This document shows positions 643 to 21,815 of a stretch of 64,000 nt of DNA, piece by piece. The DNA lies in IMG/VR virus record IMGVR_UViG_3300044974_001280, positions 1 through 64,000 of that record; one strand, given 5' to 3'. Position 1 is the stretch's first letter, and each line of letters starts with the position of its first letter. The notes beneath the pieces are model-generated. The model made no database searches. It was not told the origin of the DNA and saw nothing but the letters and a program-made list of their open reading frames with translations. Made by a program: the position numbers and the translations under genes.

Positions 643-3600
643 GAATCTTTAACTATCAACGATAACATAGATAATTATGTTTTAACAGCAACGGGTTTAA
701 CTAATGTAATTCAAGGAGAATCCTTGTTAACATTTGATGGTTCACTACCATCTCCCTTTTTGAACGTAAATGGTGTACACGTTGGCCCAGGTGGTGGTAA
801 TTGTTCAACTAATATCGCTATTGGTGAGTGTTCTCTCTCAAGTAACACTACAGGAATTAAAAATGTTGCCGTCGGATTTGGAAGCCTTTATTCGAGTTCT
901 TTCGGAATTGCCAATGTTGCGGTAGGTTACACTGCCCTCTATAATTTTACATACCCTTCTGATTCTTCGACTGCTTCTTTGGCCGTTGGTTACAAAGCTC
1001 TTTGTTCTTCTACAAATGGTAGAAGTAACACTGCGGTTGGCACCAGATCTATGTTGTCAAATTCAACAGGAGAACGTAATACTGCTTTGGGGTCTGATTC
1101 CCTAATAAGTAACTTAACCGGGTGCTTTAACACAGCCGTAGGTTTTAAAAGTTTGTATAGCAACCTAGGAGGATCTGCTAATATAGCCATTGGTAATCAA
1201 TCTCAATATTCTAACATAAGCGGAAGCTCTAATGTTGCTATTGGCAATTCAGCTTTGTCTTCGAATGCCGGAAATGCTAATGTTGCTATCGGTCAATCCG
1301 CTTTATGCTCGCAGAATTTTGCCTCCGCCTCAAACACCGCCAATGTTGCAGTTGGATATTTTGCCATGGCCTTTAATACAACGGGAAGTGGTAACGTCGC
1401 CTTAGGTACCAGAGCTCTGTTGTGTAATACGACTGGAAATTTTAATACTGCGGTAGGAATCTCTGCTTTAGCAGCAAACAACACTGGTAAATACAACACA
1501 GCCTTGGGCAGATATTCTCTTCGGTGTAATACCTCAGGAAATTTCAATACAGCAGTAGGTTTAAATGCTCTTTTTGCTAACACAACAGGCGCAAGCAACA
1601 CCGCAGTAGGTATCAGTGCTCTTCGATGTAACACAATAGGCACATGCAACACCGCACTAGGTACATCTGCTCTTTATGATAACACAACAGGCTCAGACAA
1701 CACCGCAGTAGGTACAAATTCTCTTCGATTTAACACAACAGGCACAAACAACACCGCAGTAGGTACAAATTCTCTTCGATGTAACACAATAGGTATAAAC
1801 AACATCGCAGTAGGTTCAAGTGCTCTTTGTTTAAACACAACAGGCGTAAACAACACCGCAGTAGGTTATAATGCTCTTCGATGTAACACTTCTGGTTCTA
1901 GCAACACTGCAATAGGGACCAATTCTCTTTTGGTTAATGTAACCGGAAACTCCAACACAGCTCAAGGTTTTTATTCTCTAAGATCCAATACCACAGGGGG
2001 TAATAATACTGCAGTAGGAGCTAGCTCTCTTAGATGTAACATAACAGGAAAATATAACGTAGCAATTGGATCAGGTTCTCTTTGTTGTAATTTAACAACA
2101 AACGGGAGTGTTGCAATAGGTGTAAATGCTCTAAACTTAAACCTAGTTTCTTATAATACCGCCGTAGGTGCTTTTTCACAAAGGTGCACCTCTACAGGTA
2201 CGGAAAATGTTTCTGTAGGATCAAGCACTTTGTTCAATAACACGACTGGTTCAGGTAACACCGCAGTAGGTACAAATTCATTGTGTTCAAATGTATCCGG
2301 TTCAAACAACGTAGCAGTAGGTAGATCTTCTTTATTAACAAATACTACCGGCGGATTTAACACTGCTATTGGATTTGATGCATTAAGAAGTCAGAATTTT
2401 GGTTCAACCTCTACAACTGCCAATGTAGCAGTTGGTTATGGGGCGTTAAAAACAAATTCTACAGGCACAAATAATACAGCTATAGGTACACGTTCGCTGG
2501 AACAAAATGATGCTAATTTTAATACTGCGATAGGTGCATCCGCTCTTCGATGTAACACAACAGGAATACAAAATGTTGCTGTTGGGGCAGGTGTATTGCT
2601 TGTTAACACGGGAGGATGTAATAACTCTGCTGTGGGTTTCTATGCTCTAAGATCAAATACAACAGGAGCCCTTAACACCGCAGTAGGTCAACGTGCTCTT
2701 TATTGTAACACAACAGGCTTAAATAACACCGCAGTAGGTAGCTCTTCTTTATTAACAAATACTACCGGCGGATTTAACACTGCTATTGGATTCCATGCAT
2801 TAAGAAGTCAAAATTTTGGTTCAACCTCTACAACTGCCAATGTAGCAGTTGGTTACAGAGCTTTAACAGTTAATACCACTGGTTGTTGCAATACAGCCTT
2901 AGGTAATAGATCTTTTCAAGCTAATACAATTGGAAACACTAATGTGGCCGTAGGATCTGATAGTTTATTTTCCAGCGTTTCAGCTAACAATAATGTGGCA
3001 GTGGGTATCAATACCCTCCGTAGTAATCTATCGAACGGTAACTTGGTTGCCGTAGGAGCAAATGCCCTTTGTTGTAATTGTGCTGCTAATAATGTGGCCG
3101 TTGGAGCTTTTGCTATGAGATATACCACAACAGGAACAGGGGTAGCTATTGGGTTCCAGGCACTAAGAGATAATGTAACTGGTGCCAATAATGTTGCTAT
3201 CGGTGCTAACGCGATGCGAGATAACAAAGGAGCTAATAATAACGTAGCAGTTGGATATCAAGCTCTCTTTTGCACAACGGGTTCTTCGAACGTTGCACTT
3301 GGCTTTTGTTCTCTAAGAAATAACCAAATCGGGGTCCACAATGTAGGAATAGGCTGCAATGTACAACTTCAAAATATATCAGGAGATAGAAATATAGCTG
3401 TAGGTACACTATCTCTTTCTTGTAATACCACCGGTAACTCGAATGTGGCAATAGGCTATCAATCTTTAAGAAATTCAAACTTCGGTTCCATCTCCACTAC
3501 TGCCAACGTGGCCGTGGGTTACTGCTCATTGGCATGTAATTGTATCGGAAATTCTAATGTAGCAGTTGGAACGAGAACTCTTATTAGCAATCAAACAGGT

Positions 3601-4878
3601 TCTTTTAATACTGCCATTGGGGCAAACGCCCTGAGATCTTTTGCCCCGACCCTCCCTGACACTGTTGGCAACACCGCTGTTGGAGCTTTCGCCTTAGAAA
3701 TCACAACCACAGGAGAAGGAAACGTGGCGGTGGGAAGCAATGCCTTAGATTCGAACGTCGTCGGTAATTTCAATGTGGCCATCGGAACATTCACCTTGTC
3801 CAATCAAAACTTTGATTCTGCCTCCAACACCGCTAATGTGGCGGTGGGTTACAGAGCTTTGGACTCTAATACAACAGGATGCTGGAACACAGCTCTGGGT
3901 ACCCGAGCTCTTGCTTCCAACACAACGGGTTGCGGAAATACGGCGGTGGGTTTAATGTCGCTTTTATGTAACACTTTTGGTAGTTTCAATACTGCCGTTG
4001 GTAATTGTACTTTAATAAGTAACACCACCGGGATTTGGAACACTGCTGTTGGAATGTGTAGTCTCACATGCAACACAACTGGTTGTAACAACACCGCTAT
4101 TGGGGTTGGTGCTCTTTTCTGTAATACAGGAGGGAATAGGAATGTTGCTATCGGTATAAATTCTTTATACTTTAACACTACAGGTTGCGAAAACGTTGCA
4201 GTTGGAAGTTATTCTTTAAAATGTAATAATTCGGGCATTAACAACATTGCAATTGGGATCTCATCTTTATGCCAAAATGAAAATGGTTTCCAAAATATCG
4301 CAATTGGAAACACGTCTCTCTTTTCTAACACAATTGGCTATAGAAATACTGCAGTAGGAAACTTGACATTAGGTTGTAATGTTACTGGTCGAGGTAACAC
4401 AGCAATAGGTCATTCTGCTCTTGGATGTCAAAACACAGACACCACAGGTTCTAACGCCAACGTAGGGGTTGGTTATGGAGCTTTAGAGTGTAATATAACA
4501 GGGAAGTGCAACACAGTAGTAGGCACATTCGCGGGTAGATGTAATCTTGCCTCGGGTAACACTTTTGTGGGCATCATGGCCGGCGCATCTGGCGGCACGG
4601 GCGCTTGCAACACCGCTATTGGAGCATGTGCCATGAGCACTAACTTGACAGGCAGTAGCAACGTAGTGGTAGGATTTAACCAACAAGCATGCAACCGAGT
4701 AGGTGTTTCCATGATTGGAGTGGGTGACACAGCCACCGGTAACAACCAGATGAGATTTGGAAGTACCACAGTAAACAACGGAGAAGTGGTAATGACTCCG
4801 TTATCTGTAGAAGGTTACTGGAAAGTCTTCATAAACGGTACAGAATATTGTTTATTATTACATTCAGGAGGGGTCTAA
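1..4878 (+). CDS. Large fibre/adhesin-like protein (5' partial): collagen-like G-S-S/G-T-S region followed by a long NTAVG beta-roll repeat domain; probable tail or head fibre
   Basis: Frame +1 is open from base 1 (GSSGTSGSS...) through GESLTINDNIDNYVLTATG into the track's 724..4878 ORF, so the true CDS starts before the window. It carries dozens of N(T/V)A(V/I)G repeats. Confidence 0.85.
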   Translation, partial: GSSGTSGSSGSSGSSGSSGSSGSSGSSGSSGTRGTSGTSGSSGSSGSSGSSGSSGTRGTSGTSGSSGSSGSSGSSGSSGSSGTSGSSGSSGSSGSSGSSGSSGSSGSSGSSGTSGSSGSSGSSGSSGSSGSSGSSGSSGTRGTSGTSGSSGSSGSSGSSGSSGSSGSSGSSGTRGTSGTSGSSGSSGSSGSSGSSGSSGTSGSSGTSGSSGTSGESLTINDNIDNYVLTATGLTNVIQGESLLTFDGSLPSPFLNVNGVHVGPGGGNCSTNIAIGECSLSSNTTGIKNVAVGFGSLYSSSFGIANVAVGYTALYNFTYPSDSSTASLAVGYKALCSSTNGRSNTAVGTRSMLSNSTGERNTALGSDSLISNLTGCFNTAVGFKSLYSNLGGSANIAIGNQSQYSNISGSSNVAIGNSALSSNAGNANVAIGQSALCSQNFASASNTANVAVGYFAMAFNTTGSGNVALGTRALLCNTTGNFNTAVGISALAANNTGKYNTALGRYSLRCNTSGNFNTAVGLNALFANTTGASNTAVGISALRCNTIGTCNTALGTSALYDNTTGSDNTAVGTNSLRFNTTGTNNTAVGTNSLRCNTIGINNIAVGSSALCLNTTGVNNTAVGYNALRCNTSGSSNTAIGTNSLLVNVTGNSNTAQGFYSLRSNTTGGNNTAVGASSLRCNITGKYNVAIGSGSLCCNLTTNGSVAIGVNALNLNLVSYNTAVGAFSQRCTSTGTENVSVGSSTLFNNTTGSGNTAVGTNSLCSNVSGSNNVAVGRSSLLTNTTGGFNTAIGFDALRSQNFGSTSTTANVAVGYGALKTNSTGTNNTAIGTRSLEQNDANFNTAIGASALRCNTTGIQNVAVGAGVLLVNTGGCNNSAVGFYALRSNTTGALNTAVGQRALYCNTTGLNNTAVGSSSLLTNTTGGFNTAIGFHALRSQNFGSTSTTANVAVGYRALTVNTTGCCNTALGNRSFQANTIGNTNVAVGSDSLFSSVSANNNVAVGINTLRSNLSNGNLVAVGANALCCNCAANNVAVGAFAMRYTTTGTGVAIGFQALRDNVTGANNVAIGANAMRDNKGANNNVAVGYQALFCTTGSSNVALGFCSLRNNQIGVHNVGIGCNVQLQNISGDRNIAVGTLSLSCNTTGNSNVAIGYQSLRNSNFGSISTTANVAVGYCSLACNCIGNSNVAVGTRTLISNQTGSFNTAIGANALRSFAPTLPDTVGNTAVGAFALEITTTGEGNVAVGSNALDSNVVGNFNVAIGTFTLSNQNFDSASNTANVAVGYRALDSNTTGCWNTALGTRALASNTTGCGNTAVGLMSLLCNTFGSFNTAVGNCTLISNTTGIWNTAVGMCSLTCNTTGCNNTAIGVGALFCNTGGNRNVAIGINSLYFNTTGCENVAVGSYSLKCNNSGINNIAIGISSLCQNENGFQNIAIGNTSLFSNTIGYRNTAVGNLTLGCNVTGRGNTAIGHSALGCQNTDTTGSNANVGVGYGALECNITGKCNTVVGTFAGRCNLASGNTFVGIMAGASGGTGACNTAIGACAMSTNLTGSSNVVVGFNQQACNRVGVSMIGVGDTATGNNQMRFGSTTVNNGEVVMTPLSVEGYWKVFINGTEYCLLLHSGGV
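1579..1884 (+). repeat. Six tandem 51-bp (17 aa) units of the fibre beta-roll
   Basis: Units of type aacacaacaggcNNNNNCaacaccgcagtaggt...ctctt start at 1579, 1630, 1681, 1732, 1783 and 1834. Confidence 0.9.
2314..2855 (+). repeat. 125-bp near-identical direct repeat (2314-2438 and 2731-2855)
   Basis: Manual alignment shows 4 mismatches; both copies encode SSLLTNTTGGFNTAIGF.ALRSQNFGSTSTTANVAVGY. Confidence 0.9.
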
Positions 4879-4942: not shown

Positions 4943-5599
4943 GTGAAAAAAGTACTCATCGGAACCCCATCCTACGACGGTCGAATTGACACCTGGTTTG
5001 CAGATTCTCTAGTAAGAACTATTAAACAGGCAGACCCCAAACTGATAAACATTCACGCCATTTATCCTTCATATGATTCTCTGGTCCAAAGGGCTAGAAA
5101 CGATCTGGTCAGAATGGCAATGGATGGTGGCTATGACACCCTCTTTTTTATTGATTCCGATGTGGAGTGGGAACCCGAATGGTTTTTTAGATTTTTGGCC
5201 AGACCTGAACCGATCGTGGGAGCAGCCTTGATCAAAAAATCTGATCAAGAGTCCTATACGGTCAAGATCATAAAAAAGAATCTGACCAAATCCGAGGATG
5301 ATGTATTAGTTCAGGTAGATGGTTTAGGAACAGGTTTTCTAAAGGTGGACCGATTTGCCTTGGAAAAACTCTGGTTGATGAGTGAACCTTACGTCCACGA
5401 CGGAGTTCCCAATCGGATGGTTTTTGATTTGAAGATTGTGGATGGTGATTTGATCTCCGAGGATTACGTCATGTGCCACAAATGGCAAAGTTTAGGCTAC
5501 AAAGTGTGGCTGGATCCTAGCATCACCATCAATCACAACGGGGTGAAAAAATATCAAGGCAACTTGTCCTCCTTCCTTCAAAGAAATGGCTATGTTTGA
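4943..5599 (+). CDS. GT-A fold glycosyltransferase (GT2-like)
   Basis: IGTPSY start, RARN, FFIDSD (DxD), GTGF and SEDY motifs. Confidence 0.8.
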   Translation: MKKVLIGTPSYDGRIDTWFADSLVRTIKQADPKLINIHAIYPSYDSLVQRARNDLVRMAMDGGYDTLFFIDSDVEWEPEWFFRFLARPEPIVGAALIKKSDQESYTVKIIKKNLTKSEDDVLVQVDGLGTGFLKVDRFALEKLWLMSEPYVHDGVPNRMVFDLKIVDGDLISEDYVMCHKWQSLGYKVWLDPSITINHNGVKKYQGNLSSFLQRNGYV

Positions 5600-6512
5600 A
5601 AAACCTATGGGTGGCACCGAACTGATGTTCGAAGAATTGAAAAGAAGATTACCTGATTCTGTTTGGGGTAATTACTCCATTTTTAATTATCTTCCCCAAG
5701 CTGATTTTACCAAAAAGACTATTTACTGGAATCAGCTTTCCTGGGATCAACAGGCGGTTCAATTTCTAAAGGATCGGGATCTGGTGGAAAAAATAGATCA
5801 TTTCGTCTTCGTCAGCCACTGGCAGGCGGAGCAATTCAGACAGAGGTACAATATTCCTGGTTATAAGACCCATGTCCTAAAGAATGCCTCTCTCGGAGTG
5901 GAAACCAGACCTGTAGGTCCCCGATCTATCGTCAAATTGTGTTACACTTCCACCCCTTGGAGAGGACTAAATGTTCTTCTGCGAGCCTGGGAAATACTTC
6001 AGCCCCAGAATTGTGAACTCCACGTCTTTTCTTCCTGCCACATTTACGGTCCAGAATTCGGTAAATCTGATGCCCAATACGCAACCTTATACGAAAAGTG
6101 CCGAACCACTCCTGGTATAGTTTATAGGGGCTCTATTCCCAATCCACAGCTAAGAGGGGAGTTACCGAATTTCGATCTGTTGGCCTACCCCTGTACCTTC
6201 GAGGAAACCTCCTGTATCGCCGTCATTGAATCTCTATCCGCCGGTTTAAGGGTTGTTTGTTCCAACCTGGGTGCCCTGCCTGAAACAACAGAGGGCTGGG
6301 CTCGGCTGTACCCTTATCTCATGGATCCCGAAACCCACGCCCGCAGATTTTCAAAAATTCTGAGTTCAGAAATAGAAAAGGTCAGAGACGGCGGTTGGGA
6401 TTCTTCTTTACAAGCTGTCCATTATTCTCGGGGTTGGAGTTGGGACGAGAGAATAAAAGAATGGGTCGATTTTTTTCATCAATTGGCGAATGAACTGGAC
6501 GAAAATTTTTGA
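5586..6512 (+). CDS. GT-B glycosyltransferase (GT4-like); may start at 5592
   Basis: GGTE, FVSHWQ, YTSTPWRGL and YPCTFEETSCIAVIES (EX7E) motifs. Confidence 0.85.
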   Translation: MAMFEKPMGGTELMFEELKRRLPDSVWGNYSIFNYLPQADFTKKTIYWNQLSWDQQAVQFLKDRDLVEKIDHFVFVSHWQAEQFRQRYNIPGYKTHVLKNASLGVETRPVGPRSIVKLCYTSTPWRGLNVLLRAWEILQPQNCELHVFSSCHIYGPEFGKSDAQYATLYEKCRTTPGIVYRGSIPNPQLRGELPNFDLLAYPCTFEETSCIAVIESLSAGLRVVCSNLGALPETTEGWARLYPYLMDPETHARRFSKILSSEIEKVRDGGWDSSLQAVHYSRGWSWDERIKEWVDFFHQLANELDENF

Positions 6513-7104
6513 AAAAATTCAACCTCAGACCTTTTTGGACATTGGAGCCAACGAAGGTAATTTTACCTCTACCCTTTTAAAATTTTATCCTGACTGCAAG
6601 TGTCTGATGGTAGAGCCCAACCCAGCTTGCCGTCCCTTCTTAGTTTCGATCGGTCACCCTTTTGAGATCGTTGCTGTTTCTGGCTCTAACGGTAAGGGTC
6701 TTCTTCATGTTGAAAACTCTAACTCTTTGGCAACAGGTGCTTCTTTGTACAAAGAAAACACTCAATTTTATGCCCCAGGAAAATCACACCAGACAGAAGT
6801 TCAATTGATTACCTTGGATTCTTTGAACCCTTTTCCTAACACCGAGATAGATCTCATTAAGATTGACACACAAGGGTCTGAATTGGACATTTTAAAGGGC
6901 GGGAAACTAACGATTCAACGCACAAAATTTCTCTTGCTGGAAGTATCTCTCTTAGAATATAATTTAAATGCTCCTTTGATAGATGAAGTTCTTGATTGGA
7001 CTTCTGCACACAATTTTAACTTATGTGAGATTGTAAATTATCACCGGCTAGCTAATAATCAAATATTTCAGCTAGATGTTTTATTGATGAGATCTAGCAT
7101 CTGA
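6490..7104 (+). CDS. FkbM-family SAM methyltransferase
   Basis: LDIGANEG, VEPNP and IKIDTQGSELDIL motifs. Confidence 0.9.
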   Translation: MNWTKIFEKIQPQTFLDIGANEGNFTSTLLKFYPDCKCLMVEPNPACRPFLVSIGHPFEIVAVSGSNGKGLLHVENSNSLATGASLYKENTQFYAPGKSHQTEVQLITLDSLNPFPNTEIDLIKIDTQGSELDILKGGKLTIQRTKFLLLEVSLLEYNLNAPLIDEVLDWTSAHNFNLCEIVNYHRLANNQIFQLDVLLMRSSI

Positions 7105-7327: not shown

Positions 7328-7684
7328 ATGGCAAATACACTTTTGTTTGGAAAAATAAGTCCTGTTTTGAGTGTACCACAACAAGCAAATCAATTCAGTC
7401 AAAATATCACTTTTTTAACGGCCGATTATATGGCCGCTATCGCTGATCCATATCCTCTCGGAGCGACACAAGTCAACTTTTCTGTCCTATACGGTAACTG
7501 TCAGTTCAATGAATCTAACGAAATTATAGGATTTACGACCCTCTCTAGATCTGGGATCAATCTATCAGGTTCAGTGATCCAAAGCTGGGGTGTTGATGAC
7601 AAGGTTGTTCTAAATGCTATTGCATCTGCTCAAGGAACATCTATAGTTTCGACCCAAATTGGAACAGTGGATTCTTTTTTCTAG
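7328..7684 (+). CDS. Hypothetical protein, possibly fibre-associated or virion
   Basis: Clean ORF behind a late motif; no family recognised. Confidence 0.6.
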   Translation: MANTLLFGKISPVLSVPQQANQFSQNITFLTADYMAAIADPYPLGATQVNFSVLYGNCQFNESNEIIGFTTLSRSGINLSGSVIQSWGVDDKVVLNAIASAQGTSIVSTQIGTVDSFF

Positions 7685-7704: not shown

Positions 7705-8526
7705 TTGGTTCAAAAAATCTTTTACAACAGTTCAATGCCCAGAGCAGGGTCTACTCTGATCCAAAATATACTGGGTCAGAATCCTCTTATTTACCCAACT
7801 CCAACCTCTGGTGTTTTCGAGATGCTCGCCGGGGCTAGAACAATTTTCACAGATGGTATAGAATTTAAAGCTCAATCGGAACAGGAAATGCTGGAGGGGT
7901 TTAAAGGATTCTTGAAAGGGGGACTTTATGGATTCTATAACAATATTACAGATAAACCTTACGTGATGGAAAAGTGTCGGGGCTGGAATTCGGAATGGGA
8001 GTTTGTGAATGCCTTCGATCCCAATCCAAAGATGATCTGTATGATTAGGGATATTAGGGCGGTCTATGCTTCTTTAGAAAAGAAATTCAGACAACATCCC
8101 CTTTTGGATCATCATCTAGCCAACTGGGGTAATTTGTCTGGAACTACCACCGATAAAAGGATCCAGGTTTGGTCGACTTCTCCGCCTATTGGTCCTTCCA
8201 TGGATAGAATCTACCAAGTTTTGGTCCAAGGGTTGCACGAAAAAATTCTGTTTGTTAAATTTGAAGATCTCTGTCGGGATCCAGAGTTTCAGATGAAAAG
8301 AATTTATGAATATCTCGATCTTGAATTTTTTCATCATGATTTTTACAACATTCCACAAATAACCAAAGAAGACGACCGGTGGTACGGTATTTTTGGAGAT
8401 CACGTCATTAGAAAGGAATTAAAGCCAGTGAGGGATGATTTCAGAGAAGTTTTAGGAACTAATGCCTGTAAATTAATTGAGGACAGCTATGCCTGGTTTT
8501 TTAACGATTTCGAATATCAAAGATGA
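7705..8526 (+). CDS. PAPS-dependent sulfotransferase
   Basis: 5'-PSB loop SMPRAGSTL, 3'-PB motif IRDIRAVYAS, and KFEDLCRDP. Confidence 0.9.
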   Translation: MVQKIFYNSSMPRAGSTLIQNILGQNPLIYPTPTSGVFEMLAGARTIFTDGIEFKAQSEQEMLEGFKGFLKGGLYGFYNNITDKPYVMEKCRGWNSEWEFVNAFDPNPKMICMIRDIRAVYASLEKKFRQHPLLDHHLANWGNLSGTTTDKRIQVWSTSPPIGPSMDRIYQVLVQGLHEKILFVKFEDLCRDPEFQMKRIYEYLDLEFFHHDFYNIPQITKEDDRWYGIFGDHVIRKELKPVRDDFREVLGTNACKLIEDSYAWFFNDFEYQR

Positions 8527-9542
8527 AGGTAGGATATAAAACTTCTTCTGAAATCCAGATCTCTCCCGAGCAAAAAGGAGAGATGAATTTACCCAAAGCG
8601 ACTGCCCGTAATTCAGACACAATAGTATCAATAATCACACAACAACAACAGTCCATGGAACATAAATATTTAGTTTGGCACATCGAAGGAGGTTTGGGTA
8701 AAAATGTTGCGGCTACTTCTCTTCTTTTACCCCTGGTAGAGAGATATCCCGAGAGAAAAATAATTGTGGTGGCTTCTTACCCTGAGGTTTTTTTAAACAA
8801 TCCGAACATCTATCGAGTTTATCGAGTTGGTATGACACCGTATTTTTATGACGATTACATTTTGGGTAAGGACACTTTAGTTTTTCGGCAAGAGCCTTAT
8901 TTTCAAAGCGGGCATATTCTGAAACAGAAACATCTGATTCAAAATTGGGCGGATCTTCTAGGATTAGATCTGGTTCAAAATCCTCTGCCTGATTTGAGAT
9001 TTAATATGGTTCAAAGCCAATTAACGAGCAATTGGAAAAGGGAAAGACCCATCTGTCTTATTCAAACAAACGGAGGACCCTTAGAAAATCAAGCCTACAC
9101 CTATGCCTGGACCCGAGATATTCCTATCGATTGGGCAATCTATCTGGCCAACAAGCTTTCCGACGTGTACCACATCATACAGGTCACTAGACCAGGTTCT
9201 CCTCAAATTCCCGGAGCTGAAGTGATTACTTCTCACTTGACCTCCTCTGATCTTTTTTCGCTCCTCAAAATGTCGGAAAAAAGAATTCTGATCGATTCTT
9301 GTCTCCAGCACGCCGCGGCAGCCTTCGGACTTCATGCTTTTGTTTTTTGGATAGGAACATCACCTGAGAACTTTGGTTACGGCTTGCATACTAACATCAA
9401 AGCCCTCCCACCTACAGGACAAACAAAGATGGTGGACTCTTATCTCTTCGATTATTCTTTTGACGGCGTTCTACACGAATGCCCCTATCAAAACGTGAAT
9501 GATATGTTTGATCCCACCCACTTAGAACAGATCTTTGTATGA
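8523..9542 (+). CDS. GT9-like (heptosyltransferase-fold) glycosyltransferase
   Basis: GGLGK N-terminal loop, EVFLNNP and IDSCLQHAAAA motifs. Confidence 0.7.
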   Translation: MKVGYKTSSEIQISPEQKGEMNLPKATARNSDTIVSIITQQQQSMEHKYLVWHIEGGLGKNVAATSLLLPLVERYPERKIIVVASYPEVFLNNPNIYRVYRVGMTPYFYDDYILGKDTLVFRQEPYFQSGHILKQKHLIQNWADLLGLDLVQNPLPDLRFNMVQSQLTSNWKRERPICLIQTNGGPLENQAYTYAWTRDIPIDWAIYLANKLSDVYHIIQVTRPGSPQIPGAEVITSHLTSSDLFSLLKMSEKRILIDSCLQHAAAAFGLHAFVFWIGTSPENFGYGLHTNIKALPPTGQTKMVDSYLFDYSFDGVLHECPYQNVNDMFDPTHLEQIFV

Positions 9543-10000
9543 TCTATTGGTTTACCGGTCAGCCGGGGGCTGGAAAAACAACCCTGGCCAAAGCTTTGAA
9601 GGAGACTTTGGAAATGCAAAACTCGAAAGAGGTAATGCACATTGATGGGGATGATATTCGATCCATCTTTAACAACACAGATTACAGCAGAGCTGGACGA
9701 GAAAAAAACATTCAATTAGCTCAACAGATTTCTCATTTTTTATCTATCAAGGGTCTGGATGTTGTGGTTAGTCTGGTGTCACCTTATTTGGAACAGAGAG
9801 AAGAGTTCAAAAAAAGGATGGGCTCCTCCTTGCAAGAAATTTACGTGCACACAACTGAAATCAGAGGCAGAGAAAAATTCCACGTCGAAGACTACGAAAA
9901 ACCTGAAACTAATTTTATTGAAGTAGATACTACTAATACTTCTATCATCTCAAGTCTAAATCAATTCTATGACCAAAAAATTTTCCCTTTTCATCGGTAG
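9539..10000 (+). CDS. cysC: Adenylyl-sulfate (APS) kinase, compact form
   Basis: WFTGQPGAGKTT, IDGDDIR, DYSRAGREKNI, VSPY and YEKP motifs. Confidence 0.9.
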   Translation: MIYWFTGQPGAGKTTLAKALKETLEMQNSKEVMHIDGDDIRSIFNNTDYSRAGREKNIQLAQQISHFLSIKGLDVVVSLVSPYLEQREEFKKRMGSSLQEIYVHTTEIRGREKFHVEDYEKPETNFIEVDTTNTSIISSLNQFYDQKIFPFHR

Positions 10001-10325
10001 GTGGCAGCCTTTACACGAGGGACATAAACATATTTTTAATGAGAGATTAAAATTAGGTAAGAATGTCTGGATAGCTATTCGAGATGTTACGCCCGATGAA
10101 AACCAACCCTGGACTGCTTCAGAAATCAAAGACAATATAGAAAAAATTTACTCTCGGGAAATCTCGGAGGGAAGGATTATTGTTACCATAGTTCCTGATA
10201 TTGAATCTATTAACTATGGTAGAGGAGTAGGCTATGAGATTATAGAACACGTGGTCCCAGCTGAAATTGCTTCTATTTCTGCTACCAGCATCAGAGAACA
10301 GATGAGAAAAGAAGGAACTTTATAG
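9969..10325 (+). CDS. HxGH-family nucleotidyltransferase (cytidylyltransferase-like)
   Basis: FIGRWQPLHEGH and ISATSIR motifs. Confidence 0.8.
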   Translation: MTKKFSLFIGRWQPLHEGHKHIFNERLKLGKNVWIAIRDVTPDENQPWTASEIKDNIEKIYSREISEGRIIVTIVPDIESINYGRGVGYEIIEHVVPAEIASISATSIREQMRKEGTL

Positions 10326-10334
10326 ATATAAAAC

Positions 10335-10607
10335 ATGAACCAAGAATCTAAACTAACACCAGAAGAGTTAGAAAAAATCATCACTCTTAGAGACAGCATT
10401 AGAACCAATGTTGAAAAAATTGGCAAGATGAACATCCAAAAATACTTCCTTCAAAAGGAACTGGATTTTGTCAATGAACAATTGTCTGCCCTTTATGACG
10501 AAAGCATGACCCTGTCAGAGCAGGAAAAGGCATCGATTCAAGAAATTGTTACAAAATACGGCGAGGGTCAATTAGATTTCTCAACAGGAGTTTACTCTAA
10601 GTCATAA
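10335..10607 (+). CDS. Small coiled-coil hypothetical protein
   Basis: Heptad-rich, ending YGEGQLDFSTG. Confidence 0.65.
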   Translation: MNQESKLTPEELEKIITLRDSIRTNVEKIGKMNIQKYFLQKELDFVNEQLSALYDESMTLSEQEKASIQEIVTKYGEGQLDFSTGVYSKS

Positions 10608-10609
10608 AG

Positions 10610-11674
10610 ATGACTCCAGTAGAGGTTCTCAGAAGTACCAAAAGGCATCTATTAAAATCCCTGTGGGAAGTTCAAAAGGCACTGGATGAAGCTACCAATT
10701 CACAATTGAGAATTCTTTACGTGGCCCCTCATCTTTCTACAGGAGGTATGCCACAGTACCTATATAAACTCATTGAAATTTTCAATACCCAGGCGGATGT
10801 TTACTGTTTAGAATACAGCAACATCTCTGACGAGTACGTCGTGCAAAGAAACAAAATTCAAAAATTACTAGGCAGCAGATATTACCGGATAGACGATCAC
10901 GAGGACAAGAGTCAGTTTTTGCAAATTCTAGACGAGATCTGTCCAGATGTCATTCATTTTCAAGATTTTGTAGAATTCTTTTTGGATAGGAAAATCTGCG
11001 AACACGTCTATGCCTACAATCGGCCCTGGTACATCATGGAAACCCCTCACTCTTCGGCCAATGTACCGAGTGACAAATATTGGTTACCTGACAAACTAGT
11101 TATGGTCAATCAGTGGATGGCGGATAAATTTTCCGACTGTGGCATTCCGACCGATGTTTTAGAATACCCTATTGAGCATTTTGAAAGAAGAATCTCCCGA
11201 TCAGAAGCCCAAGGAATCCTGGGTTTAGACCCTGGAAAGAAACACGTTATCAATGTCGGTCTTTTCACTCCGGGAAAAAATCAAGGTGAACTGATATCCT
11301 TTGCTAGCCAGATGTTGGATTTGCCCGTTGAGTTTCATTTCATCGGCAACACGGCAGTTAATTTTCAAGAATATTGGCAGCCTCTCGTTTCAAATCTTCC
11401 TGAAAACTGTCGTGTGTGGGGAGAAAGAGGGGACGCCGAAATTTTTTATCAAGCGGCAGATCTGTTTGTTTTTAATTCAACTTGGGAACTGAATCCAATT
11501 GTTATTAAAGAATGTCTTTCTTGGCAACTTCCGATCCTCATGAGACGTCTGACCTCATACGGTGATTTCTACGACACTGATCCCTTAGTAACTTATTTAG
11601 AAGAAGGAACTACAGGCTTGGATTTTGAAACAAATCTTGATAGACTAAAAAATTTAGTGCAGCCAGAATCATGA
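10610..11674 (+). CDS. GT4-family glycosyltransferase
   Basis: PHLSTGGMPQY, VGLFTPGKNQ and ADLFVFNSTWELNPIVIKE motifs. Confidence 0.85.
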   Translation: MTPVEVLRSTKRHLLKSLWEVQKALDEATNSQLRILYVAPHLSTGGMPQYLYKLIEIFNTQADVYCLEYSNISDEYVVQRNKIQKLLGSRYYRIDDHEDKSQFLQILDEICPDVIHFQDFVEFFLDRKICEHVYAYNRPWYIMETPHSSANVPSDKYWLPDKLVMVNQWMADKFSDCGIPTDVLEYPIEHFERRISRSEAQGILGLDPGKKHVINVGLFTPGKNQGELISFASQMLDLPVEFHFIGNTAVNFQEYWQPLVSNLPENCRVWGERGDAEIFYQAADLFVFNSTWELNPIVIKECLSWQLPILMRRLTSYGDFYDTDPLVTYLEEGTTGLDFETNLDRLKNLVQPES

Positions 11675-12855
11675 AAAACAGAGGTATCAAAGTTTACACC
11701 GAGGTAATCAGACAGAAAAAATCCAGAGTTCCTGATCAAACGGGTTTTGTATTCACCTTTGATTATGGACCAAAAGTGGTGATGAGTGGTAATAATCCAG
11801 AGCTCAAAAGAACCGTTAAGTTTTGGGACAAAAAAAATTCTAAATACGAGTATATTGGTGAAATACAGCCTGGTCTTTTTACAACTTTGTTTAGAAAATG
11901 GTATACCCCCTGGGTAGCTGAAATTTTTGATGGAGAAGAAAAGATTTGGTCGTATGATTTCGAGGAAAATCTCAAGGGCCAAAAAATTTTAGTATCTATT
12001 GACAGTGCCTCTATAGGAGATACTCTAGCCTGGATGCCTGTTATAGCTAAATTTGGTCAAAAGCACGAAGCTGAACTACTGGTCAGTACTTTTTGGAATC
12101 CTCTTCTATCTAATTTTTTTGAGAGCATTCAATTCGTAAATCCTGGCTATCGTCATCCCTCCATTCACAGCATTTTCGGAATTGGTTGGTACGAGGAGGA
12201 CGATAGATACAAACACCCCAGAGATCCAAGAACCATTTCTCTCCAGCACGTGGCTTCGGATCTTCTAGGGATCGAAGAGACCTCAGAATTGCTGATGCCT
12301 AACATCTCAGCCCAACTGGGATCTCAGCCTCGTCCTATCGAAGAAAAATATGTTTGTATAGCAACTGAATCGACAGCTAACGCAAAACATTGGCACTATC
12401 CTGGAGGATGGCAAGAGATAGTTAATTATTTAAGAGAACTCGGTTACAAGGTTGTAGTAATTCATGAACAAGCCAACAGATTAGAAAATGTAGAGGATCG
12501 CACTGGTTCAATTGATCTTTGGGAAAGAATGGTAATGCTGCATCACGCAGAGTTTTTTATTGGGATAGGGTCTGGAATTTCTTGGTTGTCCTGGGCGGTG
12601 AACGTTCCTGTCGTCATGATCTCTGGATTTTCTCTCCCTTTTTGTGAATTTTCCACCCGAAATTATCGGGTGATAAATCCCCATGTGTGTCACGGATGTT
12701 TCAACGATCCAAGATTTAAATTCGATAAAGGAGACTGGAACTGGTGTCCTAAATTAAAAAACACGGAGAGAATTTTTGAGTGTACGCGTCAGATCACTCC
12801 TGGAATGGTTAAAGAGGCCATTCACAATCTAATTCAAGATATTTCTCAGGGCTAA
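11671..12855 (+). CDS. Autotransporter strand-loop-strand O-heptosyltransferase (TibC/Aah, BAHT family)
   Basis: SIGDTLAW catalytic-loop motif, GIGSGISWLSW, VMISGFS, and a four-Cys Fe site (CHGC...WCP...FECT). Confidence 0.85.
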   Translation: MKNRGIKVYTEVIRQKKSRVPDQTGFVFTFDYGPKVVMSGNNPELKRTVKFWDKKNSKYEYIGEIQPGLFTTLFRKWYTPWVAEIFDGEEKIWSYDFEENLKGQKILVSIDSASIGDTLAWMPVIAKFGQKHEAELLVSTFWNPLLSNFFESIQFVNPGYRHPSIHSIFGIGWYEEDDRYKHPRDPRTISLQHVASDLLGIEETSELLMPNISAQLGSQPRPIEEKYVCIATESTANAKHWHYPGGWQEIVNYLRELGYKVVVIHEQANRLENVEDRTGSIDLWERMVMLHHAEFFIGIGSGISWLSWAVNVPVVMISGFSLPFCEFSTRNYRVINPHVCHGCFNDPRFKFDKGDWNWCPKLKNTERIFECTRQITPGMVKEAIHNLIQDISQG

Positions 12856-18202: not shown

Positions 18203-18235
18203 AATAAATAATTACAAAATTCCTGTTTTTTTGTG

Positions 18236-18243
18236 GATATATA
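18236..18243 (+). promoter_or_regulatory. Putative late promoter GATATATA
   Basis: Recurrent motif. Confidence 0.7.
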
Positions 18244-18269
18244 AGCTGAAAAATATCCTCTGTAAAATA

Positions 18270-21200: not shown

Positions 21201-21815
21201 GTCAGAGAGAACAACAGAAATCTAAACGTTCCTCCAGCTGCTTACGTTTCGAACAACTTTGTCCGGAAGTTTGCCAACGGAGAACCTTACAACATTATAG
21301 CTGGTCAGAAAAGAGGTACGATCTCAGGAGGTACTATCGTAGGAGTAGAATACGACTTCACCAACGACGATAGGGGCTGGCTAGAACCTTTCGGTCTCAA
21401 TCCAATCATCAAGAAGAGAGGATTCGGGGTCGTTATTTTCGGAAACCAAACCGCTTATCAGGTTGTAAATTCTGCATTTAATCTTGTGCACGTTCGGGAT
21501 TTACTGATCAGTCTTGAAAACGACGTCGAAGAAATTCTCTCTAATTATCTCTTTGACTTCAACGAGGACTCAATTCGTTTAGAGATCAAGACTATCGTTG
21601 ATACCTATTTGGATGGAGTGAGAGCAGGGGGTGGTATTTATGCCTACCAAGTTATTATGGATGCTTCCAATAATCCTCCTTCTATTATCGATCAGAACAT
21701 CGGTATCATCGATGTGATAATCGAGCCAGCAAGGGGTATTCAAAAATTCATTAACAGAATCACAGTCACCCGAACCGGAGGCATAGCTGCAGGAGGTTTC
21801 ATCAACTTTGTGTAA
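18270..21815 (+). CDS. gp18: Contractile tail sheath protein (gp18-like) with large insertion domains
   Basis: ASGVYTLEFD and GFSNKGPFNAP at the N-terminus; VPPAAYV, GNQT, VHVRDLL and FDFN at the C-terminus. ATG 18270 is preferred over 18153 because it follows the promoter. Confidence 0.92.
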   Translation: MAKKIKLDLSQFKASGVYTLEFDASENVILTSQTIRLVVGFSNKGPFNAPVYIPDITTAIAIFGDIDKTLESQGSYFQRSIFTCLQTGPVFALNLLKLNNDEDSPTADKVNYFGFSVATDEPNGVLTSRLYSSFYNKERFWYADVDYFLATMSIPDQGRIFNLVNLGQEPMSVIVRKSTDANPPLQGYDVFAIDWYGADNVPSYVHPYDYISDWFIDIIAVSGNWTDYASLSQDPEWAEYFTRNGFVKSKINQFLSQQNVNIISQTTGCLIVDFVDLNGNNQFIQTLVNNNTPSTGLFCAVDAEALDYLCQNRFKVDLVGNFLIDELTGDRDLEDPTLNFLSYDQQLVQDYVYTQNYIGITGAGGVTGGTAAIAYSGLNVGTLHRIDGVTGSYGIPASALVPYSSTATFGGLHYVRTNSGVTGGAVVNVYITNGGTGYTSAPTVTFSGPGTGAAATAVITGDAVSSITLTASGSGYTSAPSVTFSGGGGTGAAASADILTEPSLTSAQKTLLKDFLTPSATSSPFIVGTVTIPAGASGNVVNQFSSGNLVKLKVSGVAETSGDLTITFTHPLDTGFYSAQGISVQPTFLTAGITGSFVNAFYQQFGASDYLNIDAIASVTGAAQSNTLVGQISTSLYQNIQYDEIQDGDTVWLNSEGSSIYYLDTQLTVDRDQYNVAYVRAFDNIARQNPDDLVNYPPFGSVYASDNIGIGVTAGKTDIVSSVASINQFLDVVPGATGSRSNPNTFLFAPDQANDKIISVGDLLVSTDLELCETVGANRQSRLTKVTSVAQTTTSGIVRVTCSRPIYFYAGDPVQVQKFKSIPQFTRSFDFIYLQGYTMRDAQRPNGSDLRVNEILDVLYNTNLAATLATKDVISFRYIVDTFSGTIQPNSKFQLSKLAMMRQKALAFINAPSMAQFRASTDPRFTNAPTATDPFPPLEARYIAEGGNLSLNPSYTFSLPTQDLGASYAAFYTPYITVRENNRNLNVPPAAYVSNNFVRKFANGEPYNIIAGQKRGTISGGTIVGVEYDFTNDDRGWLEPFGLNPIIKKRGFGVVIFGNQTAYQVVNSAFNLVHVRDLLISLENDVEEILSNYLFDFNEDSIRLEIKTIVDTYLDGVRAGGGIYAYQVIMDASNNPPSIIDQNIGIIDVIIEPARGIQKFINRITVTRTGGIAAGGFINFV

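Follow-up and report, generated by a model that had tools for sequence, protein, structure and literature searches.

Sulfate activation is the entry to all sulfation and to assimilatory sulfate reduction, and to our knowledge no types of sulfate-activating enzyme are recognised beyond Sat and CysDN. The sulfurylase domain of the human enzyme requires its HNGH motif (PMC11697783). In the case of Campylobacter MeOPN, the cytidylyltransferase Cj1416 and the CysC-like Cj1415 lead to CDP-phosphoramidate 3'-phosphate (PMC11800397, citing Taylor and Raushel 2018). Phage NMN adenylyltransferase (NMNAT) has been interpreted in a cyanophage study as NAD-related and countering NAD-depleting defences (PMC12801897).

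Here we analyzed a 64,000-nucleotide stretch (the window; positions 1 to 64,000) of the virus record IMGVR_UViG_3300044974_001280, which comprises 230,445 bases and is 85% complete (CheckV). The window encodes a 118 aa HxGH nucleotidyltransferase (NT) next to an APS kinase. By a modest margin we favour the view that NT represents a third, minimal type of ATP sulfurylase, of a family separate from Sat (PF01747) and CysDN; the evidence is comparative only and includes no enzymology.

The four-gene block and its surroundings

The phage is T4-like, with 230 kb of sequence, and the block belongs to a glycosylation cluster within its structural module (Table 1). The preliminary description had recognised a sulfotransferase, a GT9-like gene, an APS kinase and the 118 aa HxGH protein. 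All four ORFs were confirmed at the same coordinates on the + strand, the GT9-like assignment holding only as a remote relationship. The genes overlap, in order, by 4, 4 and 32 bp and are translationally coupled. The ORFs are long, the family matches are significant and dozens of related contigs share the gene order, so that a chance arrangement can be dismissed.

Table 1. Features of the block, its cluster and the distant heptose kinase gene
Feature	Length (aa)	Coordinates	Strand	Evidence
Conserved ORF, weakly GT2-like	218	4943-5599	+	PF00535 E 0.027 only
GT1/GT4-type glycosyltransferase		5586-6512	+	PF13692 E 3e-9; PF00534 E 6e-8
FkbM-family methyltransferase		6490-7104	+	PF05050 E 7.4e-21
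Conserved ORF, function unknown, immediately 5' of sulfotransferase	118	7328-7684	+	no Pfam/PHROG match
Sulfotransferase	273	7705-8526	+	PF13469 E 2.6e-15, 57.7 bits (cut-off 27)
Putative GT-B glycosyltransferase, remotely GT9-like	339	8523-9542	+	ESM-Atlas neighbours
Short-lid APS kinase	153	9539-10000	+	PF01583 E 2.2e-21, 76.9 bits (cut-off 21.1)
HxGH nucleotidyltransferase (NT)	118	9969-10325	+	PF01467 E 1e-5, 26.2 bits (cut-off 21)
ORF, function unknown	90	10335-10607	+	no family match
GT1/GT4-type glycosyltransferase		10610-11674	+	PF00534 E 8.6e-9
GT9 (heptosyltransferase-family) glycosyltransferase		11671-12855	+	PF01075 E 5.4e-8, 32.9 bits (cut-off 22)
HldA-like D-glycero-beta-D-manno-heptose-7-phosphate kinase, stand-alone		38753-39751	+	TIGR02198 303.3 bits, E 1.7e-90 (cut-off 345)

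The 273 aa protein also matched PF00685 (E 3.2e-12, 46.8 bits, cut-off 22) and phrog_27463 (E 1.6e-33), and contains both PAPS-binding motifs, the 5'-PSB PRAGST (12-17) and the 3'-PB RDIRAVYAS (115-123). By its Pfam matches and the two motifs it meets the criteria for a PAPS-dependent sulfotransferase of the Sulfotransfer_3/1 type, the activity itself being inferred from sequence, and it is the sole sulfotransferase detected in the whole 230 kb record. The Pfam search with the 339 aa protein revealed nothing even at E 10, and viral GT9 (PF01075) clusters are among its ESM-Atlas neighbours (feature score 0.97, TM 0.72-0.9); the term GT9-like is restricted to a remote relationship because it rests on these neighbours alone. 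This gene and the sulfotransferase were found together in 26 of 80 phage loci.

The 153 aa protein is an APS kinase by Pfam and motifs. Its best PDB matches are APS kinases (E 2e-14), and the alignment showed that the P-loop, DGDxxR, R54, SP and R87 are retained. The criteria of equivalog score (TIGR00455, 80 vs 138.7 bits) and full-length lid were not met, about 20 lid residues being absent in comparison with canonical CysC. That it converts APS to PAPS is inferred. No APS kinase other than one of this short type was detected in the SAR406 genomes G071 and G060.

The 218 aa ORF keeps its position in loci L001-L003, and in L001-L004 a 121 aa ORF occupies the slot preceding the sulfotransferase. 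The 90 aa ORF fills the slot held in most related phages by DUF2061, which follows NT in 63 of 80 related loci and was not found in this phage genome. The earlier observation that the window contains no Sat or CysD held and was extended to the whole 230,445-base record, in which neither Sat (PF01747) nor CysD (TIGR02039/PF01507) gave a match. No Sat was found in 32 related or named phage records.

The nucleotidyltransferase and its nearest relatives

NT belongs to the PF01467 HxGH nucleotidyltransferase superfamily, all criteria (Pfam score, HxGH, ISxTxxR) being met, and to a large, uncharacterised family of about 1,100 representatives. Its motifs are GRWQPLHEGH (10-19), IRD (37-39), NQP (45-47), PDIE (76-79), GRGVGY (84-89) and ISATSIR (103-109). 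In an alignment of 61 diverse members the HxGH and ISxTxxR catalytic residues were all invariant or nearly so (invariant: G10, R11, H16, G18, H19, S104, T106 and R109), and R38, D77, G84, R85, G88 and Y89 were conserved as family-specific residues. The AF2 model (pLDDT 94.2) gave Z 10.5-11 against the cores of PPAT and of archaeal NMNAT, PPAT being the top VIA-align match (Z 11.0). The nearest relatives by sequence and structure are the NMN adenylyltransferases and PPAT, not Sat, and the family clearly descends from archaeal/NadM-type NMN adenylyltransferases. Compared with its NMNAT relatives, NT lacks about 40 residues of the substrate-side subdomain.

The preliminary description had also placed Sat in the same superfamily as the small protein, which was confirmed. 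Foldseek matched the NT model to the ATP sulfurylase 8a8g with probability 1.0, but only at rank 39, and hhalign of NT against Sat domains (E 1e-4, probability 57.5%, 119 columns) paired HxGH with HRAH and ISATxIR with LSGTKxR. Membership in the Sat family itself was rejected, since there was no PF01747 match and the QxRNP and GRDHAG motifs are absent; PF01747 gave only sub-threshold matches of 14.2 bits, in the HxGH region, to the NT genes of loci L044 and L045.

Routine annotation would make NT a true NMN/NaMN adenylyltransferase for NAD+ synthesis or salvage, for example against NAD-depleting defences. In favour of this reading, the best matches are archaeal/NadM-type (profile E 1.4e-13 to 1f9a, 24-27% core identity) and JGI labels NT homologues as NMNAT. 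On the other hand, with the NMNAT models TIGR01527, NF002243 and the NadM models the window NT reached 19-33 bits (best NCBIfam matches 30-33 bits) and its SAR406 orthologue 27-38 bits, against cut-offs of 127-409. The profile homology is limited to the N-terminal 75-80 residues or so, and in comparison with the DSS3P8 NadM domain NT lacks the C-terminal helices and about 40 residues between PDIE and ISATxIR, a segment which, from NMNAT structures, we take to be part of the NMN pocket. The genomic context also differs: the genuine phage NadM of DSS3P8 lies two genes 5' of NadV, whereas no NadV, Nudix or PnuC was present among the annotated recurrent neighbour clusters of NT. Moreover, NadD scored above cut-off in 9 of 10 NT-bearing cellular genomes, and at another place the phage genome separately encodes a full-size NMNAT-like domain. 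The NMNAT reading is thereby weakened and is held to be very unlikely.

A second possibility, raised in the preliminary description, is an HldC-like enzyme that would act with the phage HldA-like kinase to make ADP-heptose for the GT9-family heptosyltransferases of the phage. This is supported by the kinase itself, encoded in a 230 kb record with no fused or separate HldC, by the two GT9-type genes flanking NT, and by the HldA-like PfkB kinase and histidine phosphatase that adjoin NT in some SAR406 loci. Against it, NT gave no TIGR02199 match even at E 0.1 and its motifs are of the NMNAT type (GRxQPxHxGH, ISATxIR). A separate bona fide HldC (194-212 bits, cut-off 181.5) was present in all five SAR406 genomes tested; these true HldC genes, and not the NT genes, were among the TIGR02199 matches at E <= 1e-3. 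Where SAR406 has the PfkB gene at all, it lies on the strand opposite to NT. Among 30 large related phage records that carry the pair, an HldA-like gene occurs in only 2, with none in the 5 records of at least 90% completeness. The phage record contains no GmhA/SIS and no HldC (TIGR02199 search, E <= 0.1), and an HldC role would leave the obligate pairing and the fusion with CysC and the APS-reductase context described below unexplained. This alternative is therefore weakened and is considered unlikely; a residual ADP-heptose possibility remains for this genome because the phage has an HldA-like kinase without HldC.

Genomic partners of NT and the distribution of known sulfurylases

Of 80 phage loci, 76-77 have an APS-kinase homologue directly 5' of NT; of 80 cellular loci, about 68 have an APS kinase that adjoins NT or is fused to it. 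CysC fusions, which the preliminary description had named as worth seeking among homologues, were found in both orders: the best 150 representatives at 50% identity included 27 kinase-NT and 12 NT-kinase fusions, and phrog_10255 is itself a fusion of kinase and NT. The cellular partner is a genuine CysC by the TIGR00455 equivalog cut-off (138.7 bits), with 257.9 bits for the kinase of locus L090 and 152-187 bits for those of Chitinophagaceae and Pyrinomonadaceae, which are the sole APS kinase of each genome. In Xylella, Xanthomonas and Stenotrophomonas phages the fusion lies amid early/DNA-metabolism genes without an annotated sulfotransferase; we take CysDN to be present in the hosts of these phages.

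The recurrent annotated neighbours of NT are CysC, DUF2061, sulfotransferases and glycan genes, and four distinct sulfotransferase groups adjoin NT across phage and cellular loci. Among 80 phage loci, 30 have the Sulfotransfer_3/1 type and 8 have Sulfotransfer_2, Sulfotransfer_5 (E 4e-48) lies near NT in 24 SAR406 loci, and in Chitinophagaceae and Acidobacteria a sulfotransferase-like gene of 321 aa follows NT immediately (Atlas score 0.99). A complete related phage (G026, 176.6 kb) carries the kinase-NT pair with no detectable sulfotransferase. In four Nitrospirota loci NT occurs without the kinase and comes, on the same strand, after a sulfite/nitrite-reductase-family gene and a thioredoxin-dependent APS reductase (TIGR02055 273 bits, cut-off 235; CC and CxxC cysteine pairs). 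The Nitrospirota genomes with this operon also contain a canonical Sat-CysC fusion, which counts against the sulfurylase reading.

NT and the kinase could instead produce another 3'-phosphorylated nucleotide-activated donor, not PAPS. That a CysC homologue can work on a nucleotide other than a sulfate one is known from the Campylobacter route (PMC11800397), and CoA synthesis, with its PPAT and dephospho-CoA-kinase steps, is a further precedent for such a pathway. Also in favour of this alternative, the window kinase falls below the CysC equivalog cut-off and its shortened lid could admit another substrate, PPAT is structurally as near to NT as NMNAT, and some phages carry the pair without any sulfotransferase. 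However, the cellular partner kinases clear the CysC equivalog cut-offs, and the genes that recur beside NT encode sulfotransferases with PAPS motifs and, for one lineage, an APS reductase. No glutamine-kinase-like or amidohydrolase/gamma-glutamyl-CDP-amidate hydrolase partner recurred among the annotated neighbour clusters, and the loss of the substrate subdomain points to a very small second substrate. Another donor thus appears unlikely.

Among 44 cellular genomes with the kinase-NT pair, Sat was detected in only 2 and CysD in only 2, so that approximately 90% have neither. Many of these carriers are SAGs or MAGs of unstated completeness; those lacking both enzymes include Chitinophagaceae and Pyrinomonadaceae genomes of 4.1-4.7 Mb, which are also without CysH and sulfite reductase. 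In 121 Marinimicrobia genomes, each at least 80% complete, Sat or CysD was present in 72 of 78 genomes with APS kinase and without NT (8% having neither) compared with 0 of 3 NT-bearing genomes (Fisher p = 0.001, uncorrected for phylogeny). Many marine bacteria and archaea with no known sulfate-activating enzyme carry the pair, which for this reason could fill a real gap in the sulfur pathway.

It is also conceivable that NT is a non-catalytic or regulatory ATP-binding partner of APS kinase, the host supplying APS. NT is very small and has lost one subdomain, and many phage hosts would own an ATP sulfurylase. Against this, the HxGH/ISxTxxR catalytic residues are maintained across the 61 members, most cellular carriers lack any other way to obtain APS, and NT is found kinase-less beside APS reductase; we regard this explanation as very unlikely.

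Proposed activity and comparison with known systems

Gene structure, family memberships, conserved motifs, fusions, neighbourhoods and phyletic patterns are shown by the data above. A minimal ATP sulfurylase is the best explanation because of the coupling or fusion to the kinase, the sulfotransferase neighbours, the Nitrospirota switch, the absence of Sat and CysD, and the NadD and HldC that carriers already possess. The suggestion in the preliminary description that the small HxGH protein may be a minimal sulfate adenylyltransferase is therefore supported by several independent comparative lines, without enzymology. Counting against it are the closer kinship of NT to NMNATs and PPAT than to Sat, the related phage G026 and the Xylella, Xanthomonas and Stenotrophomonas phages in which no sulfotransferase accompanies the pair or fusion, the Sat-CysC fusion of the Nitrospirota carriers, the HldA-like kinase and GT9-like genes of this phage in the absence of HldC, the unstated completeness of many carrier genomes, Fisher tests uncorrected for phylogeny, and the low equivalog score and shortened lid of the window kinase.

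In this reading NT would adenylylate sulfate (ATP + sulfate -> APS + PPi), an EC 2.7.7.4 activity inferred from comparative evidence only. The GRWQPLHEGH and ISATSIR motifs would grip the triphosphate of ATP, as they do throughout the HxGH nucleotidyltransferases, and the family-specific invariant basic residues R38 and R85 would stand in for the deleted NMN-binding subdomain, orienting sulfate, a small anion, so that it can attack the alpha-phosphate in line; both the substrate and the roles of R38 and R85 are inferred. APS formation is strongly unfavourable. NT would therefore work only coupled to an APS consumer, a need that would explain its overlap or fusion with APS kinase, or the APS reductase alongside. 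In this phage the overlapping 153 aa short-lid kinase would turn APS into PAPS, which the sulfotransferase, two genes 5' of the kinase-NT pair, would use to sulfate an acceptor. The acceptor, also inferred, is most likely a glycan made by the nearby GT1, GT9-like and GT2-like transferases and the FkbM methyltransferase. A self-contained route to sulfated virion glycans had been proposed; the virion target is possible, being suggested only by the location of the cluster in the structural module, and virion versus host surface is untested.

A bolder reading, which taken as a whole we hold to be slightly favoured by the evidence, is that a third ATP sulfurylase class of about 115-135 aa arose from an NMNAT-type ancestor by loss of the NMN-binding subdomain. 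It would be obligately partnered with an APS consumer (adjacent or fused CysC, or APS reductase) and would be the sole sulfate activator in streamlined SAR406, marine group III archaea and Chitinophagaceae, and in some Acidobacteria, CPR bacteria and DPANN archaea. Marine and plant-pathogen phages would have acquired this enzyme as a portable module for PAPS synthesis, which in this phage would serve to sulfate phage-built glycans.

If this is true, many genomes now deemed unable to activate sulfate could produce PAPS, among them those of the abundant ocean SAR406 and marine group III archaea. This would account for their 'orphan' CysC genes and sulfotransferases, and metabolic reconstructions and sulfur-cycle surveys would need an additional marker gene. 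The 118-residue NT would be the smallest sulfurylase known and a clean case of substrate switching through domain loss, and might serve as a compact part for enzymatic PAPS regeneration. Phages would possess a sulfation module sufficient in itself, and virions or infected cell surfaces would by implication bear sulfated glycans, of which we found no report for phages in the literature searched. Phage 'NMNAT' annotations, read as NAD-related counter-defence, may be wrong for the NT subfamily.

With the NadM-type NMNATs (1f9a, 1ej2, 2qjo; TIGR01527, NF002243) NT has in common the fold (Z 10.4-10.7, 24-27% identity over 110-114 residues) and the GRxQPxHxGH, NP(F/W) loop, PDI(E) and IS(A/G)TxIR elements. 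It is, however, about 50 residues shorter and does not meet the criterion of a complete domain (about 170 aa); the invariant R38-D39 and GRxVGY are specific to the NT family, and its partners are CysC, sulfotransferases and APS reductase, not NadV/Nudix. HldC and HldE domain II (TIGR02199) are, like NT, small adenylyltransferases of the cytidylyltransferase superfamily found in glycan clusters with GT9, but NT gives no detectable match to them and has another motif type, and HldC coexists with NT in SAR406.

Sat (PF01747; 8a8g; the ATPS domain of human PAPSS1) belongs to the same HxGH/HxxH superfamily, and the chemistry proposed for NT is alike. Both end in an SGTxxR-like motif and both are fused to APS kinase in either order, as in PAPS synthases. 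NT differs in lacking the PUA-like N-terminal domain and in being about one third of the size (118 aa vs 383-440 aa for stand-alone Sat ORFs). CysDN resembles NT in the proposed reaction and in its place before CysC, but the fold is unrelated: CysDN consists of a PAPS-reductase-like ATP pyrophosphatase and a GTPase and is driven by GTP hydrolysis, whereas NT would depend on coupling to the kinase or reductase. The logic is shared with PPAT plus dephospho-CoA kinase and with Cj1416 plus Cj1415, where a small HxGH nucleotidyltransferase makes NMP-X and a P-loop kinase phosphorylates the 3'-OH. The substrates differ in these routes, while the cellular kinase of NT is CysC by curated thresholds and the consumers beside NT are sulfotransferases or APS reductase.

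The putative sulfation block and its phage genome

The stretch analyzed makes up the first 64 kb of a virus record of 230,445 bases (85% complete by CheckV), which belongs to a T4-like myovirus with two portal paralogues, a large terminase, tail sheath, DNA ligase, clamp loader and 5'-3' exonuclease. The four genes of the sulfation block lie head to tail with overlaps of 4, 4 and 32 bp. The overlapping block described in the preliminary description therefore held, although its GT9 label stands only as a remote relationship, since a Pfam search with that product gave zero matches and the label rests on ESM-Atlas neighbours. Both PAPS-binding motifs are present in the sulfotransferase, PRAGST (residues 12-17) and RDIRAVYAS (residues 115-123). 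The kinase scored under the cut-off of the CysC (APS kinase) equivalog model TIGR00455 (80 vs 138.7 bits). This short-lid type keeps the P-loop, DGDxxR, second arginine and SP motif, and is the only APS kinase found in two SAR406 genomes (G071 and G060). Neither Sat nor CysD, the two recognised ATP sulfurylase types, was found across the whole 230 kb record, extending the earlier observation that both are missing from the window. A DNA-level search of the 3.4 kb block against GenBank phages gave zero matches.

Features of the phage and of related loci (window positions unless another record is named)
Feature	Location	Strand	Evidence
Repeat-rich virion structural/tail-spike-like protein	724-4878		1,384 aa; 10-15 repeated matched stretches to phrog_23837, phrog_6002, phrog_4636
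Sulfotransferase	7705-8526	+	PF13469 57.7 bits, PF00685 46.8 bits
Remotely GT9-like gene	8523-9542	+	ESM-Atlas neighbours including viral GT9 clusters
APS-kinase family gene	9539-10000	+	PF01583 76.9 bits; best PDB matches all APS kinases
HxGH nucleotidyltransferase (NT)	9969-10325	+	118 aa; PF01467 26.2 bits
Tail sheath	18153-21815		1,220 aa; sheath match at residues 823-1208
T4-like portal (gp20), first paralogue	35507-37111		534 aa; PF07230, E 3e-62
T4-like portal (gp20), second paralogue	37117-38742		541 aa; PF07230, E 3e-60
HldA-like heptose-7-phosphate kinase	38753-39751		TIGR02198 303 bits
RNA-ligase-like/NMNAT-type ORF, beyond the window	whole phage record (G000) ~126811-128760 (L175:61-2010)		649 aa
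DUF2061 genes of related loci	L001:6354-6830, L005:5351-5557, L006:6386-6598, L139:9303-10001

The block belongs to a wider glycan gene cluster spanning 4.9-12.9 kb, whose other members are an FkbM methyltransferase gene, two GT1 genes, one further GT9 gene and an ORF that weakly resembles GT2; structural and packaging genes follow downstream. Since the cluster lies between a huge repeat-rich virion protein and packaging/tail genes, its genes may be expressed late and act on a glycan of the virion or cell surface. The sulfated virion glycans proposed in the preliminary description thus remain a guess from cluster position. The repeat-rich protein, encoded directly upstream of the cluster, might be the glycan acceptor.

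Other features of this genome were also observed. The portal paralogues are in tandem; a duplicated portal gene is unusual. The sheath protein looks very long for its kind, and its insert at about 450-540 matches domains of fibre, baseplate and head-decoration proteins. In window positions 1-64000 no tRNA or tmRNA gene was predicted by ARAGORN.

Partners of the nucleotidyltransferase in phages and cells

A word-indexed search returned 4,779 homologues of NT, many of them about 70% identical and 116-133 aa long. When 1.84 billion cluster representatives were searched exhaustively, 1,101 belonged to the family at E <=1e-3. In the 80 related IMG/VR loci retrieved with the single NT protein as query, the kinase gene was directly upstream of NT in 76-77 and a DUF2061 gene directly downstream in 63. 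A sulfotransferase of the window type (Sulfotransfer_3/1) was present in 30 and Sulfotransfer_2 (PF03567) in 8 more; the other neighbours were glycan genes and, beyond them, genes for sheath and baseplate. CysC fusions among homologues, a check proposed earlier, were found: the best 150 representatives included 27 kinase-NT, 12 NT-kinase, 3 NT-NT and at least one NT-DUF2061 fusion. As both orders occur, the kinase/NT fusion arose more than once. The N-terminal half of phrog_10255 (230 aa, labelled 'kinase') matches the window kinase and its C-terminal half NT. The fusion is also present in the Xylella phages Salvo, Sano and Bacata, the Xanthomonas phages AhaSv and Seregon and the Stenotrophomonas phage DLP_6.

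Not every phage context fits sulfation. The complete related phage G026 (176.6 kb) has the kinase-NT pair, but no sulfotransferase was detected in it by two Pfam families, four custom HMMs and a motif scan, which remains unexplained. In the Xylella, Xanthomonas and Stenotrophomonas phages the fusion lies among early genes with no sulfotransferase annotated, and its product may possibly feed host enzymes. The fusion gene of Salvo (gp32) is flanked by MazG, 'cysteine dioxygenase' and topoisomerase genes and that of DLP_6 (AAY80_227) by DNA ligase, Fe(II) oxygenase and Ser/Thr phosphatase genes, with no annotated sulfotransferase near either. Salvo and DLP_6 are cultured phages of plant-pathogen/soil bacteria and convenient for experiments.

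Variants of the locus were noted. Two APS-kinase-like genes precede NT in L012, L016, L018-L022, L029, L041, L047-L049 and L056. The phage-like contig L005 (GCA_028508435.1) has its DUF2061, kinase and NT genes inside a region of 7-deazaguanine (QueC, QueD/PTPS, radical SAM, GTP cyclohydrolase I) and carbamoyltransferase genes. The divergent stand-alone members P0158, P0144 and P0177 are on contigs of just 0.9-1.7 kb, whose context is uninformative.

A scan of one genome per prokaryotic species with a 12-sequence alignment yielded 177 cellular relatives. The carriers included SAR406/Marinimicrobia single cells (contigs up to 640 kb), chromosomes of 4.5-4.7 Mb from Chitinophagaceae and Pyrinomonadaceae, marine group III archaea, Verrucomicrobiota, CPR bacteria and Nitrospiraceae. 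Of the 80 cellular loci kept, about 68 had the kinase gene next to NT or fused to it. The partner kinase of a SAR406 locus (L090) scored 257.9 bits with TIGR00455 (cut-off 138.7), and those of Chitinophagaceae and Pyrinomonadaceae, the sole APS kinases of their genomes, 152-187 bits, so by curated thresholds the cellular partner is a genuine CysC.

Family matches also place PAPS consumers beside NT in unrelated lineages. Sulfotransfer_5 (E 4e-48) was found in 24 SAR406 loci, within a capsule/EPS biosynthesis and export cluster, and a sulfotransferase-like gene of 321 aa (Atlas score 0.99) lies directly 3' of NT in Chitinophagaceae and Acidobacteria. In SAR406 a different gene, also of 321 aa, accompanies the pair; the suspicion that it encodes a new sulfotransferase or transporter was rejected, as its product is a Wzz-like chain-length determinant. 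In L090, L095, L109, L113, L118 and L123 (SAR406/Fidelibacterota) a class IV aminotransferase and Sulfotransfer_5 form a constant pair that remains at most a few kb from kinase-NT, while gene order varies elsewhere in the capsule locus. Two marine group III archaeal loci (L127 and L136) have co-directional genes for AdoHcy hydrolase, SAM synthetase, short APS kinase, NT and SHMT, a gene order from which a link between sulfate activation and the methyl cycle can be inferred.

It could be argued that the pair makes a different 3'-phospho-nucleotide donor by a two-step, MeOPN-like or CoA-like pathway, as in Campylobacter MeOPN synthesis a CysC homologue acts on CDP-phosphoramidate (PMC11800397). 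This is still possible for the short-lid phage kinases, but fits ill with canonical CysC partners, sulfotransferases and APS reductase, and we consider it unlikely. The APS reductase is found in four Nitrospirota loci. There NT has no kinase, and upstream of it on its own strand are a gene of the siroheme sulfite/nitrite reductase family and one for a thioredoxin-dependent APS reductase (TIGR02055 273 bits, cut-off 235), which has both iron-sulfur cysteine pairs, CC and CxxC. A kinase where the neighbour needs PAPS, and none where APS is needed, is as predicted for an APS-forming enzyme. However, this switch counts as one observation, being confined to a single lineage, and the Nitrospiraceae with the APS-reductase operon also carry a Sat-CysC fusion, which fits the sulfurylase reading poorly.

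Sat was present in only 5 of 50 NT-bearing cellular genomes, three of them Nitrospiraceae with kinase-less NT, and CysD in 2-3. About 90% of the 44 kinase-NT cellular genomes lacked both. In the large genomes G078-G080 and G082, CysH and sulfite reductase are missing as well, indicating that these genomes do not assimilate sulfate at all, and yet CysC, NT and a sulfotransferase are retained. The control was a sample of 121 Marinimicrobia genomes with a completeness of 80% or more, 81 of which have an APS kinase. Sat or CysD was present in 72 of the 78 (92%) NT-negative genomes of this group and in none of the 3 NT-positive ones (Fisher p = 0.001); against the kinase-NT genomes (4/44) the same comparison gave p = 4e-21. 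No phylogenetic correction was applied to the tests, and completeness is not stated for the 44 genomes, so these numbers describe a pattern and are not proof.

DUF2061, the third conserved partner, is a small protein with an HERxWY motif, annotated by JGI in the homologue P0008 as 'uncharacterized membrane protein'. It is fused to CysC in Chitinophagaceae and to NT in P0003, P0008 and P0130, and was not found in the genome of the window's phage. The literature holds only incidental mentions of it, in metal-/iron-regulation transcriptome papers, and its role is not explained by the sulfurylase reading.

Fold of the nucleotidyltransferase and alternative identities

Among 61 diverse members G10, R11, H19 and G88 are invariant, and H16, G18, R38, P47, D77, G84, R85, V87, Y89, S104, T106 and R109 nearly so. 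They comprise the two superfamily motifs that bind ATP, HxGH and ISxTxxR, together with a family-specific R-D after strand 2 and GRxVGY. The AlphaFold model (pLDDT 94.2) aligned over 110-114 of 118 residues with the cores of archaeal NMN adenylyltransferase (NMNAT) and PPAT (Z 10.5-11; Foldseek, VIA-align). The best structural identity, 24-27%, was to NMNAT, and no close structural match was found among reviewed UniProt proteins. The family profile matched archaeal NMNAT 1f9a with E 1.4e-13, confined to the first ~75 residues. Compared with the genuine phage NadM domain of Roseobacter phage DSS3P8 gp110, whose gene is two genes upstream of NadV, the NT family is missing about 40 of the residues between PDIE and ISATxIR, as well as the C-terminal helices. 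Motifs, model and alignment thus indicate that NT is of NMNAT descent and keeps the full catalytic core, but little of the region on the side of the second substrate.

In view of this ancestry NT might itself be an NMNAT, and one phage paper that mentions a phage NMNAT interprets it as NAD metabolism (PMC12801897). This is unlikely. NT scores far under the cut-offs of every NMNAT model, part of the domain is deleted, no NAD-salvage genes occur among its annotated neighbours and NadD is above its cut-off in 9 of 10 carrier genomes. The phage also has a separate, full-size NMNAT-like domain at ~128 kb, fused to an RNA-ligase-like protein. This ORF, with an RNA-ligase-like N-terminal part (KMDG) and the motifs GRFQPFHLGH and SATEVR, is a second and different HxGH nucleotidyltransferase of the same phage.

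The alternative raised in the preliminary description, an HldC-like enzyme making ADP-heptose, was taken seriously. In its favour, the phage encodes a stand-alone HldA-like kinase and GT9-type genes, with no HldC or GmhA in the 230 kb record, and in SAR406 loci an HldA-like gene is often near NT, where PfkB/HldA, histidine phosphatase and SIS genes resemble a heptose pathway. However, NT had no TIGR02199 match even at E 0.1, bona fide HldC was found elsewhere in all five SAR406 genomes tested, and the SAR406 HldA gene is absent or on the opposite strand. An HldA-like gene is present in just 2 of the 30 large records of related phages that carry the pair, and in none of the 5 that are at least 90% complete. 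On these grounds heptose activation was rejected as the conserved role of the pair and is an unlikely identity for NT, although a moonlighting role in ADP-heptose synthesis in this phage cannot be excluded. The phage's HldA-like (D-glycero-beta-D-manno-heptose-7-phosphate kinase) gene sits between the portal paralogues and DNA ligase.

Proposed reaction and relation to Sat-type sulfurylases

On balance we favour, with moderate confidence, the view that NT is a sulfate adenylyltransferase; the minimal enzyme suggested in the preliminary description is supported by comparative genomics alone, and the activity is inferred. In the proposed mechanism, HxGH and ISATxIR would hold ATP, the family-specific R38 and R85 would position sulfate where the deleted subdomain would hold NMN, and APS and PPi would be formed. 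The equilibrium of APS formation lies far towards ATP and sulfate, so a sulfurylase is useful only if APS is removed at once, which would account for a kinase gene that overlaps NT or is fused to it, and for the lineage in which NT is paired with APS reductase instead. PAPS would then be made by the kinase of the phage and used by the sulfotransferase to sulfate a product of the glycosyltransferases encoded nearby.

NT falls outside the Sat family, and no PF01747 match was found in the phage genome. Across 32 phage records, the only sub-threshold Sat matches (14 bits, positions 29-67 of the model) fell on the HxGH region of NT genes. The full-text literature searched yielded no description of another type of ATP sulfurylase, or of what the NT family does. 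Profile-profile comparison of the family with twelve Sat catalytic domains gave a probability of 57.5% (E 1e-4), a moderate support that is consistent with shared superfamily and chemistry and cannot decide function. In this alignment HxGH corresponds to HRAH of Sat, ISATxIR to LSGTKxR, and NYGR-GVG falls onto the NYGC...GRDHAGVG segment; the histidines of HNGH are essential in the human sulfurylase domain (PMC11697783). Both the reaction and the superfamily are thus known, and what would be new, if the sulfurylase reading is correct, is an enzyme family not recognised so far, unusual in both its size and its distribution.
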